NCBI GenBank assembly: GCA_004764695.1
Contig: SMSO01000024.1
Coordinates: forward strand, 31,889-62,246
Source: Schizochytrium sp. TIO01
Lineage: Eukaryota > Protista > Bigyra: Labyrinthulomycetes
Direction of reading: 5' to 3'
DNA length: 30,358 nucleotides
Part shown: positions 27,596-30,246 of the stretch, piece after piece
Numbering within the stretch: position 1 is the first letter of the stretch
How the letters are laid out: every line of letters begins with the position of its first letter
Notes under the pieces: model-generated
The model's input: the letters and a program-made list of their open reading frames with translations, nothing else
Database searches by the model: none
What the model was told of the DNA's origin: nothing
Translations under genes and position numbers: made by a program

Positions 27596-30246
27596 CTAAG
27601 GATCAGTAAAAACGAAATGACATCAACTCCGTTCGTCAGTTAACAATTTCACGTCATCAAAAGGCACCCACAGTATTGCCAGTACAGTTTCATTTATTCT
27701 CTGATATTATCATGTTCTTTGTTACATCCACAATCAACCAAACAAACAATGCCGCAACAAACTTGCAATGACGCGAAGAAAAACATCGGCAAAACAACAC
27801 AGTAGACAACCCACGACGCAACCAACCAACCAAGTCTCATGCACAAAACAGTACACGAGCTATTGCTTAAACAACTTACTCAAGTAATGTCAGCGACCCG
27901 TTCACTTTCAGCGCCGCACCCACTGCCTTGGCGCCCTCGTAGCCGATATCCTTGCCAACAAGACTGTCGATTTGATTGAATGATGGCAAGCAATACATTA
28001 CACGTTACATATTACAATAGATGCACGCATGCATGCATGGACGTGAGTGATCTAGGTAGGCTTTCAGCATTTAGCTTTGTTGTGTTGTCAGTTTGCTCTT
28101 TGTTCGATGGATGTGTACTCCCTCAAACAGACAACTCATCCATCCATCAAACAAACAAGCGATTGCATAAACTTGCAAAACAACACTGACCCACCCACCA
28201 AACAACAAACCAAGCATCATGTACAAACAAGTCCACGAGCTGCGGTGTTGCGTAGACAACTTACTTGAGTGATGTCAGCGACCGGTTCTCTTTCAGCGCC
28301 GCACCCACTGCCTTGGCGCCCTCGTCGCCGATGTGGTTGTAGGAAAGACTGTCGATTCGATTCAATGATGGCAAGCAATACATTACACGTTACATATTAC
28401 AATAGATGCACGCATGCATGCATGGACGTGAGTGATCTAGGTTGGCTTTCAGCATTTATCTTTGTTGTGTTGTCATTTTGTTCTTTGTTCGATGGATGTA
28501 TACTCACTCAAACAGACAACTCATTCATCCATCAAACAAGCAAACAAACAAAAAAGCGATTGCATAAACTTGCAAAACAACACCGACCCACCCACCAAAC
28601 AACAAACCAAGCATCATGTACAAACAAGTCCAAGAGCTGCGGTGTTGCGTAGGCAACTTACGATAGTGATGTCAGCGACCGGTTCTCTTTCAGCGCCGAA
28701 GCCACTGCCTTGGCGCCCTCGGCGCCGATTTTGATCGAAGTAAGACTGTCGATTCGATTGAATGATGGCCAGCAATACATTACATGTTACATGTTACAAT
28801 AGATGCACGCATGCATGCATGGACGTGAGTGATCTAGGTTGGCTTTTAGGATTTAGGATTTCCTCTTTGTTGTGTTGTCATTTTCCTCTTTGATTAATGC
28901 ATAATCAATCAATCAATCAAGCAAGCAAGCAAGCAAGCAAACAAACAACAAACCAAGCATCATGTACAAACAAGTCCACGAGCTGCGGTGTTGCGTAGAC
29001 AACTTACGATAGTGATGTCAGCGACCGGTTCTCTTTCAGCGCCAAAGCCACTGACTTGGCGCCCTCTAAGCCGACTTCGTTCGCAGTAAGACTGTCGATT
29101 TGATTGAATGATGGCCAGCAATACATTACATGTTACATGTTACAATAGATGCACGCATGCATGCATGGACGTGAGTGATCTAGGTTGGCTTTTAGGATTT
29201 CCTCTTTGTTGTGTTGTCATTTTCCTCTTTGTTCGATGGATGTATACTCACTCAAACAGACAACCCATCCATCCATCAAACAAACAAGCGATTGCATAAA
29301 CTTGCAAAACAACACTGACCCACCCACCAAACAACAAACCAAGCATCAGGTACAAACAAGTCCACGAGCTGCGGTGTTGCGTAAACAACTTACGATAGTG
29401 ATATCAGCGACCGGTTCTCTTTCAGCGCCGCACCCACTGCCTTGGCGCCCTCGTCGCCGATATCGGTGCGTTGAAGACTGTCGATTTGATTGAATGATGG
29501 CAAGCAATACATTACACGTTACATATTACAATAGATGCACGCATGCATGCATGGACGTGAGTGATCTAGGTTGGCTTTCACCATTTATCTTTGTTGTGTT
29601 GTCATTTTGCTCTTTGTTCGATGGATGTATACTCACTCAAACAGACAACTCATCCATCCATCAAACAAACAAGCGATTGCATAAACTTGCAAAACAACAC
29701 CGACCCACCCACCAAACAACAAACCAAGCATCATGTACAAACAAGTCCACGAGCTGCGGTGTTGCGTAGACAACTTACGATAGTGATGTCAGCGACCGGT
29801 TCTCTTTCAGCGCCGAAGCCACTGCCTTGGCGCCCTCGTCGCCGATCTGGTTGTAGGAAAGACTGTCGATTTGATTGAATGATGGCAAGCAATACATTAC
29901 ACGTTACATATTACAATAGATGCACGCATGCATGCATGGACGTGAGTGATCTAGGTTGGCTTTCAGCATTTATCTTTGTTGTGTTGTCATTTTGCTCTTT
30001 GTTCGATGGATGTATACTCACTCAAACAGACAACTCATCCATCCATCAAACAAACAAGCGATAGCATAAACTTGCAAACAACACCGACCCACCCACCAAA
30101 CAACAAACCAAGCATCATGTACAAACAAGTCCACGAGCTGCGGTGTTGCGTAGACAACTTACTCGAGTGATGTCAGCGACCGGTTCTCTTTCAACGCTGC
30201 AGCCACTGCCTTGGCGCCCTCGTCGCCGATTTCATTATTCCGAAGT
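27274..30246 (-). CDS. Multi-exon LRR protein gene, 5'-partial: 7 x 84-nt LRR exons + 322-nt terminal exon
   Basis: Exons 30246-30163, 29862-29779, 29477-29394, 29091-29008, 28745-28662, 28348-28265, 27963-27880, 27595-27274. All have AG acceptors; the seven LRR exons have GTAAGT donors; phase 2 throughout, no stops. Product: LRNNEIGDEGAKAVAAALKENRSLTSLD LSYNQIGDEGAKAVASALKENRSLTSLS LQRTDIGDEGAKAVGAALKENRSLISLS LTANEVGLEGAKSVALALKENRSLTSLS LTSIKIGAEGAKAVASALKENRSLTSLS LSYNHIGDEGAKAVGAALKENRSLTSLN LVGKDIGYEGAKAVGAALKVNGSLTLLE MSDWFTNEMYKELELNK... Confidence 0.9.

Follow-up and report, generated by a model that had tools for sequence, protein, structure and literature searches.

A chromosome-end repeat of a thraustochytrid as the probable exon and intron unit of a hypervariable leucine-rich repeat gene family

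Introduction

Why should a handful of codons differ from one repeat to the next at all of their positions, when the introns beside them remain almost the same? The question is raised by a stretch of 30,358 nucleotides from Schizochytrium sp. TIO01 (contig SMSO01000024.1, here C23, positions 31,889 to 62,246; "the window" below), whose right-hand end carries an array of leucine-rich repeat (LRR) exons on the minus strand. An earlier note, made from the letters of the window, had drawn attention to this reversal and had ascribed it to strong diversifying selection, or to targeted diversification, acting on top of concerted evolution. Our analysis suggests that the array and the exon that follows it are probably the 3' two-thirds of a protein-coding gene, one of a family of about 100 LRR genes at the chromosome ends of a thraustochytrid resembling Aurantiochytrium limacinum, and that the repeat published as LORE-TEARS Group 0 is the exon-plus-intron unit of such genes. 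In A. limacinum, Group 0 was described as a unit of about 385 bp, present in about nine copies between the 5S and 18S genes (10.1101/2023.06.15.545109). The DNA is thus already in print as a spacer, and what is new is the reading of LORE-TEARS as a hypervariable LRR gene family of about 100 members. To that reading the window contributes a 5'-truncated member with its complete twin on contig C7, a comparison of array introns with tail exons, and a test of nonsynonymous against synonymous single-nucleotide steps.

A Probable Gene Built of One-Repeat Exons

A regular-expression scan of the minus strand for AG, 84 nt and GTAAGT, over 27000-30358, returns exactly seven units, all free of stops. 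All seven are open only in the frame that begins at exon nt 2, which places the introns in phase 2-2, as the earlier note had it. The translations fit the pattern L-x-x-N-x-IG-x-EGAKAV-x-AALKENRSLTSL, with codons 2-5 of exons 1 to 7 reading RNNE, SYNQ, QRTD, TANE, TSIK, SYNH and VGKD. Both this list and the replacement of the ladder Asn in three of the seven exons (by T, I and K) reproduce what had been claimed. The K of the last repeat is no private change, being a conserved trait of the terminal repeat of the family (LVGKG and LAGKD in paralogues). According to Tandem Repeats Finder the array has a period of 385 bp, the unit being one 84-nt exon and an intron of about 301 nt.

In the genome the unit occurs at least 404 times. 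In all the loci fetched, 149 of 152 family exons are exactly 84 nt long, with AG/GT borders and no stop; the other three have frameshifts of 1-2 nt. The family introns, in contrast, come in 35 distinct lengths between 262 and 331 nt. Exons so uniform among introns so uneven in length are more than chance would provide.

Each exon encodes one 28-residue LRR of the ribonuclease-inhibitor type, which is also that of the nucleotide-binding LRR receptors (NLRs). Each exon was searched by itself, and the proteins P0004, P0002 and P0008 from the database took the place of the spliced product. Three single exons reach the gathering cut-off of Pfam LRR_6 (PF13516; 23.4 bits), namely exon 1 at the cut-off itself, exon 2 at 26.8 bits and exon 6 at 25.1 bits. 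A sequence search with P0008 returns ribonuclease inhibitor, LRRC34 and NLRP chains with E values from 1e-32 to 1e-10.

Followed along the minus strand from the end of the contig, the gene enters the window in a partial array intron (30247..30358) that resembles the 3' part of the other array introns. LRR exon 1 (LRNNEIGDEGAKAVAAALKENRSLTSL; 30163..30246; 84 nt, AG/GTAAGT, open in phase 2) and exon 2 (LSYNQ...; 29779..29862; AG/GTAAGT, open) are followed by exon 3 (LQRTD..., ladder Asn to Thr; 29394..29477), whose patch also occurs at C6:22261. Exon 4 (LTANEVGLEGAKSVALAL...; 29008..29091) has an atypical scaffold and an identical unit at C24:5828150, and exon 5 (LTSIK..., ladder Asn to Ile; 28662..28745) corresponds to LTSNK in the C24 paralogue. 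Exon 6 (LSYNH...; 28265..28348; AG/GTAAGT, open) precedes exon 7, the terminal capping repeat (LVGKDIGYEGAKAVGAALKVNGSLTLL; 27880..27963), whose paralogues share its K for N and its LKVNxSLTLL ending. Six array introns of 300, 301, 302, 262, 313 and 301 nt are interleaved with exons 2-6 (27964..30162, minus). The last intron (284 nt; 27596..27879, minus) has about 60% identity to them and is unrelated. The terminal exon (27274..27595, minus; open reading frame 27274-27594) finishes the split codon (GA+A = Glu) and encodes a helical tail of 106 residues and the stop. Introns of phase 2 that start with GTAAGT have a further consequence: since a retained intron at any unit reads xxG-TAA (e.g. 27874-27881 and 28259-28266), retention would end the protein right after that repeat.

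The array had been called intact. All its exons are indeed open, but the contig ends inside it (base 62246 of C23, window base 30358), so that the 5' part of the array and of the gene is cut off. The missing part can be read from C7, where 1055752-1042621 matches window 17210-30358 at 98.8% identity and the gene part differs at only 7 of 3,085 nt (99.8% identical). The C7 array runs on past the end of the window copy with three extra LRR exons and then a first exon, which reads ATG...MSDHPRVVTALEQLQNGATTL plus 2 nt and borders on GTAAGT. This first exon has 21 codons and is of phase 2, and a 5S gene of divergent orientation is found at a distance of about 460 nt. The complete gene therefore has one first exon of 21 codons, 10 LRR exons and the tail exon, which together encode about 409 residues, and it lies between a 5S gene (L034 3686-3804) and an 18S gene (L035 2659). 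By inspection, the first exon has no hydrophobic, signal-peptide-like stretch, and the protein is probably intracellular. As no NACHT or NB-ARC domain lies upstream of the LRRs, where the complete C7 gene has 21 codons and then the LRR exons, the product is not an NLR.

The tail exon is present in about 101 genomic copies, about 95 of them open, with 36-100% amino-acid identity; five or six copies carry stops. The tail encoded in the window is found with 100% amino-acid identity at three loci. An AlphaFold model has helices at 2-47, 50-59 and 72-104 and a disordered linker, with a predicted template-modelling score of 0.35. The motifs ELRC, AAN and LG.Y are invariant across species. The tail has no match in Pfam and no usable one in the ESM Atlas, and a two-copy complex prediction scored 0.00, which was counted neither for nor against binding. 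Two proteins of other organisms, P0002 and P0008, also have LRRs followed by this tail (41% and 38% identical, respectively). A homologue search with P0002 returned only P0002 itself, and one with P0008 returned generic ribonuclease-inhibitor-like LRR proteins that lack the tail. In the mechanism that we propose below, the helical tail would serve as a shared output or assembly module.

Splicing and Expression

Splicing was examined in assembled contigs, not reads, of three sequencing runs, of which X2 and X10 (from different studies) are RNA-like and X19 is DNA-like; the RNA nature of the first two is a guess. Exon bins are covered about 19-fold more deeply than pure-intron bins in X2 and about 60-fold more deeply in X10, while the ratio is about 0.8 in X19. 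The contrast is not one of copy number, because exons and introns are equally repeated. In contigs of X2 and X10, exon donor ends (29779, 28265, about 29397 and about 30165) run straight into 'TCTT...', where another LRR exon, whose variable patch is different, begins; donor end 29779 is so joined in X2, and 28265 in both runs. X19 has at the same place the genomic, unspliced 'tcgacag|TCTT'. The terminal exon is covered by contigs of the RNA-like runs at 98-99% identity.

A further junction comes from P0004, an open reading frame of an MMETSP transcript that was found through the tail. It reads ...LEGNNIGDKGAKAMAAALKVNWSLTLL-E-MSDGLTDELYKELELNKQ..., that is, last LRR exon, E and tail (SLTLL-E-MSD). 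This agrees exactly with the join predicted between the last LRR exon and the tail exon, and comes from a close paralogue whose last intron has been removed. The first 12 residues of P0004 translate the end of an array intron, so its transcript had not been fully spliced. The junction contigs and P0004 support splicing at the AG/GTAAGT sites for the family; it is not proven for the window copy.

These results bear on the published reading, in which the repeat would be a non-coding structural spacer for the maintenance of chromosome ends or of ribosomal DNA (rDNA), its open frames being incidental. LORE-TEARS were described as spacers without similarity to GenBank sequences, and G-quadruplexes were noted in them (10.1101/2023.06.15.545109). 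The array introns are indeed unusually conserved, and each carries a G-rich motif, GGTGGGTGGGTCGG, on the coding strand (e.g. 30075-30090, minus). However, a spacer would hardly be expected to keep 149 exons of 27 codons each without a stop, exact 84-nt exons next to introns of variable length, matches to LRR_6 and about 95 open tail exons, or to yield spliced-junction contigs and transcript-derived open reading frames. We consider the non-coding reading highly improbable; a structural role of the DNA could coexist with coding. Further along each array intron lies an alternating purine-pyrimidine tract, CATGCATGCATGCGTGCAT, and an Rfam search with the conserved array introns matched no RNA family.

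Hypervariable Codons and Selection

The variation of the exons is concentrated in a few codons. Within the window, introns 1-6 are on average 94.4% identical (range 89-99%) and the third positions of the scaffold codons 98.6% identical, while codons 2, 3 and 5 are only 32% identical, close to random. The barely varying introns of about 300 nt described in the earlier note stand up with a mean identity of 94%, except for intron 4, which has 262 nt and only 89-92% identity to the other array introns. In this most divergent of the array introns, a (CAAG)n/(AATC)n microsatellite at 28903-28959 replaces part of the sequence.

The same contrast was quantified over the family, in 141 non-redundant exons from 15 genome segments. 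Nucleotide diversity is 0.71 at each of the three positions of codon 2, 0.72, 0.54 and 0.37 at those of codon 3, 0.71, 0.30 and 0.72 at those of codon 5, and about 0.5 at all three of codon 8. The last three bases of the exon reach 0.67, 0.69 and 0.48, and the second base of codon 15 reaches 0.45. All other exon positions lie between 0.00 and 0.13, barring a synonymous exception in the patch that is taken up below, and well-aligned intron columns average 0.083. In round figures, codons 2, 3, 5 and the split codon stand at about 0.7 and codon 8 at about 0.5, and the scaffold at 0.01-0.06. The hypervariable codons (2, 3, 5, the split codon and 8) have 8-9 times the diversity of the introns, and the claim that these codons vary more than the introns holds for the family. 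At synonymous sites of the scaffold the diversity is 0.05, lower than that of the introns. Sequencing error was considered as a source of the variation and rejected, as in the earlier note: the copies on C7 and C24 have the same codons, and so do short-read contigs that cross the exon-intron borders.

The manner in which these codons vary provides evidence for selection on amino-acid change. The 687 hypervariable codons contain no stop, against 31.6 +/- 4.3 expected from column shuffling, and 92% of the residues at hypervariable positions are polar, charged, Tyr or Gly. The overall ratio of nonsynonymous to synonymous differences per site (pN/pS) is 1.08 in these codons, whose sites are saturated, and patches that are single-nucleotide neighbours were used instead. 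Among such steps, the hypervariable codons have 36 nonsynonymous and 2 synonymous changes, where neutrality predicts 20% synonymous (p = 0.023). The scaffold codons of the same exons have 36 and 20, and the two sets differ with a Fisher odds ratio of 10 (p = 4.6e-4). The diversity excess, the lack of stops and the contrast of 36:2 with 36:20 support the diversifying selection that had been proposed.

Homogenization and Reshuffling of the Units

The sameness of the introns calls for an explanation of its own, which is provided by a comparison between loci. When the array introns of five other genes are compared with those of the window, identity is 93.6-95.0%, as high as among the window introns themselves (93.9%). 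The tail exons of four of these genes have only 83-88% nucleotide identity to the window tail, with synonymous differences of 0.14-0.28; the tail of the fifth, on C24, is 99.4% identical at the nucleotide level. Non-coding array DNA is more alike between genes than are the unique coding tails, which argues for homogenization across loci and bears out the concerted evolution that the earlier note had invoked.

Homogenization stops short of the variable codons. In unit pairs whose flanking introns are both less than 2% apart, about 50% of the hypervariable nucleotides still differ, and the differences per patch are bimodal, some patches being identical and the others apart at about 5 of 15 positions. 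Sixty such pairs have their differences gathered in sharp islands (exon nt 4-10, 14-16, 23-25, 45/47 and 82-84), outside of which they are close to zero right up to the splice sites. Codons 2, 3, 5 and 8 are non-randomly associated, and patch types such as LSYNK, LLNNR and LQRTD recur at several loci.

The C24 gene illustrates the movement of whole units. It has a different unit order and a duplicated TANE-TSNK-SYNH-LLNNR block under its near-identical tail, so the unequal crossing-over that it records must be recent. The gene (G000:C24:5824338-5831892; L003-L005, L023, L028) has at least 16 units, and its exon at 5830834 has a frameshift that the assembly may have introduced in error. Because of free recombination among the units, they have no single tree.

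The mechanism that we propose on these grounds is one of two opposing processes. At least 400 units on many chromosome ends exchange sequence by unequal crossing-over and by gene conversion, which keeps the introns and the scaffold codons near identical, and whole patches and whole units are reshuffled between genes. Selection for different binding surfaces would oppose homogenization at the variable codons, and the outcome would be a germline repertoire of LRR binding proteins. The ligands might be non-self molecules, for example those of resident mirusviruses, which is a guess.

Position of the Variable Residues on the LRR Fold

The structure was modelled on the homologue P0008, which has six to seven LRRs and the tail (57 aligned sequences), and not on the product of the window. 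In its AlphaFold model the LRR part has a predicted local distance difference test score above 90, with strand and helix alternating as in a curved solenoid. Foldseek aligns the model with the LRRs of NOD2 (root-mean-square deviation 1.1 A over 157 columns) and also matches it to LRRC34, tropomodulin, NLRPs and ribonuclease inhibitor. DSSP assigns strands to positions 3-5 of LxxLxLxxN and the start of the helix to position 13.

Placed on this model by motif, the variable residues are positions 5, 7, 8, 10 and 13 of LxxLxLxxNxIGx. Position 5, which is encoded by the split codon, is the last residue of the strand, position 13 is the first of the helix, and 7, 8 and 10 are in the loop between. 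In established LRR structures these five positions belong to the concave face and the adjoining ascending loop, and the invariant L, N, I and G residues form the core. The earlier note had spoken of ligand-facing codons, and on the horseshoe predicted for P0008 the variable residues do fall at the end of the beta strand and in the loop that follows it.

Constraint, Decay and Targeted Change

Several observations weigh against the reading of the locus as an expressed member of a gene family under diversifying selection. Constraint is weak, because pN/pS of the scaffold is 0.69 and dN/dS (nonsynonymous to synonymous rate) of the tail 0.5-1.0. Two internal repeats of the window lack the ladder Asn, a condition seen in only 8 of 141 family exons. 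Exon 4, the most copy-specific, has no depth in X10 and intron-level depth in X2. In both of these runs the depth of the last intron is close to that of the terminal exon, whereas the array introns stand 20-60 times below their exons; frequent retention, an alternative 3' end or another transcript are possible causes. Finally, synonymous sites in the patch are themselves diverse (Leu27 has 0.67 at its third position, Asn4 has 0.22 and Leu1 has 0.12), synonymous differences per site (pS) reach 0.57 in the hypervariable codons, and selection on amino acids alone does not explain this diversity.

Some of these points would fit a decaying or redundant copy, namely a truncated gene fragment, recently duplicated and possibly silent, or else a duplication of the C7 end made by the assembly; its variation would then mirror no more than the past of the family. 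The array is cut by the contig end, the region is 99.8% identical to C7, the scaffold of exon 4 is atypical and its depth nil in X10, and decay does occur in the family, as three frameshifted exons and the tail copies with stops attest. However, the seven exons and the tail have all kept open frames and canonical splice sites, the C7 copy lacks no part and has a start exon, the tail protein is identical at three loci, and another locus shares the Thr at the Asn position. In addition, contigs of the RNA-like runs match the terminal exon closely. Decay or redundancy of the window copy seems unlikely on this evidence.

The synonymous diversity of the patch bears on a different alternative, the targeted diversification of the earlier note, in which a somatic or germline mutator, or templated replacement of patches, rewrites the first codons of the exon, with selection on ordinary mutations playing no causal part. 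Lamprey variable lymphocyte receptor (VLR) assembly, the mosaics of trypanosome variant surface glycoproteins and diversity-generating retroelements would be its analogues. Such a process could account for the bimodal differences between units with near-identical flanks (one pair differs at nine of nine hypervariable nucleotides with introns 0.3% apart), for the hypervariable synonymous positions, and for alternatives that differ at all three bases. Codon 8 is either GAC (78 exons) or TCA (46 exons), almost without synonymous variants, and the exons end in CAA, ATC or TGA, as parts of CTC-AA, CTA-TC and CTT-GA, where the synonymous third base of the Leu codon is linked to the split codon.

The comparison of near-identical copies speaks otherwise. 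Between C23 and C7 there are 0 changes in about 126 hypervariable nt and 7 elsewhere, which disfavours a rate more than about 10 times the background, and the orthologous block of C24 differs by single steps only. Contigs of the DNA run have no variant letters in the exons, and the patches LSYNK, LLNNR and LQRTD, recurring as they do at several loci, are inherited. Nor is there any sign of somatic assembly in the manner of VLRs: the germline gene on C7 is complete and duplicates share their hypervariable codons. Ordinary conversion between near-identical flanks, together with selection against the loss of variants, suffices to account for the pattern, and no special machinery is called for. 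Targeted diversification is thus not supported, and we regard it as quite improbable. We read the triple-base alternatives as old variant lineages, shielded by selection while conversion homogenizes their surroundings.

Relation to Known Systems

The array is the same DNA as LORE-TEARS Group 0, with the 385-bp period, the position between 5S and 18S genes and the TTAGG telomeres, which are present at contig ends here and were described for LORE-TEARS as well (10.1101/2023.06.15.545109). The difference is that here each unit is one LRR exon and one intron of a spliced gene. Among the papers searched, no other mentions these repeats.

The closest architecture is that of the LRR genes of Tetrahymena, which have arrays of exact 90-bp exons with more than 96% phase-2 introns and are enriched near chromosome ends (PMC6564038). 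Their exon-plus-intron units are masked as repeats, the genes have spread through ectopic recombination and unequal crossing-over, and a few members are fusions with protein kinases (PMC6564038). Both systems consist of tandem exons of exact length, each encoding one LRR, in phase 2, which is a likeness of architecture, and the left-hand gene of the window likewise carries a kinase. Here, however, the exons have 84 nt, the LRR is of the ribonuclease-inhibitor type, and the genes number about 100 instead of thousands; they lie between rRNA genes at every chromosome end and share a helical tail, and no association with retrotransposons was seen. The contrast of hypervariable islands with homogenized introns is also quantified here.

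At the protein level, the 28-residue repeat, LxxLxLxxNxIGdxGaxxLaxaLkxNxxL, resembles that of the NLR-C or NOD-type proteins (NOD2, NLRC3) and of ribonuclease inhibitor. The vertebrate genes NOD1, NOD2 and NLRC3 also encode one LRR per 84-bp exon. The present proteins differ in having no NACHT or NB-ARC domain, and a C-terminal helical tail in place of an N-terminal effector domain. The plant NLR and Cf clusters, which are germline-encoded, and the lamprey VLRs, which are somatic, also vary at the x residues of the LxxLxLxxN strand and loop and exchange units between paralogues in recombination-prone regions. In contrast, the proteins considered here have LRRs and the tail only and are probably intracellular, and recognition by them is our inference. 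To our knowledge, no immune pathway is known in the protist host.

Genomic Surroundings

About 3.9 kb separate the LRR gene from the 18S gene downstream of it, and the direction of transcription is the same for both. The window contains a complete 18S-5.8S-28S rDNA unit (17793-23322, minus), which shares its strand with the LRR gene and whose internal spacers are very short (86 and 154 nt). A 5S gene lies at 10478-10596 (plus), and tRNA genes at 15162-15235, 16005-16075 and 16993-17107, the last of which, at 115 nt, probably bears an intron.

At the other end of the window is a second array (1-4048 and 4571-7295, plus) with a period of 424 bp and 9.6 copies. LORE-TEARS Group 5 has a unit of about 421 bp (10.1101/2023.06.15.545109). 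The left array has LRR-like exons which, in this assembly, depart from the 84-nt pattern by indels. Long open reading frames come after it, one of which encodes a protein of 566 residues with a protein kinase domain and a Cys-rich C-terminus.

Implications

If the coding reading is right, chromosome-end repeats published as non-coding become some 100 spliced genes, and the annotation of every chromosome end of a model thraustochytrid changes with them. The family is also an unusually clean natural case in which concerted evolution and diversifying selection work within a few nucleotides of each other, with hypervariable islands of 3-7 nt inside otherwise almost identical units of 385 bp.

The host carries persistent mirusviruses. 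Beyond the gene family itself, we put forward, tentatively and as a possibility with more doubt than confidence attached to it, that all chromosome ends together hold a germline repertoire of about 100 intracellular LRR proteins, built from at least 400 interchangeable one-repeat cassettes whose binding faces would be reshuffled by subtelomeric recombination and kept different by selection. Such a repertoire may serve innate recognition in a protist, for example of mirusviruses, and would have arisen independently of plant and animal NLRs. If so, the symmetric phase-2 exons would also permit exon skipping that preserves the frame. Should recognition be what the proteins do, stramenopiles would have in this family a candidate repertoire for innate recognition.

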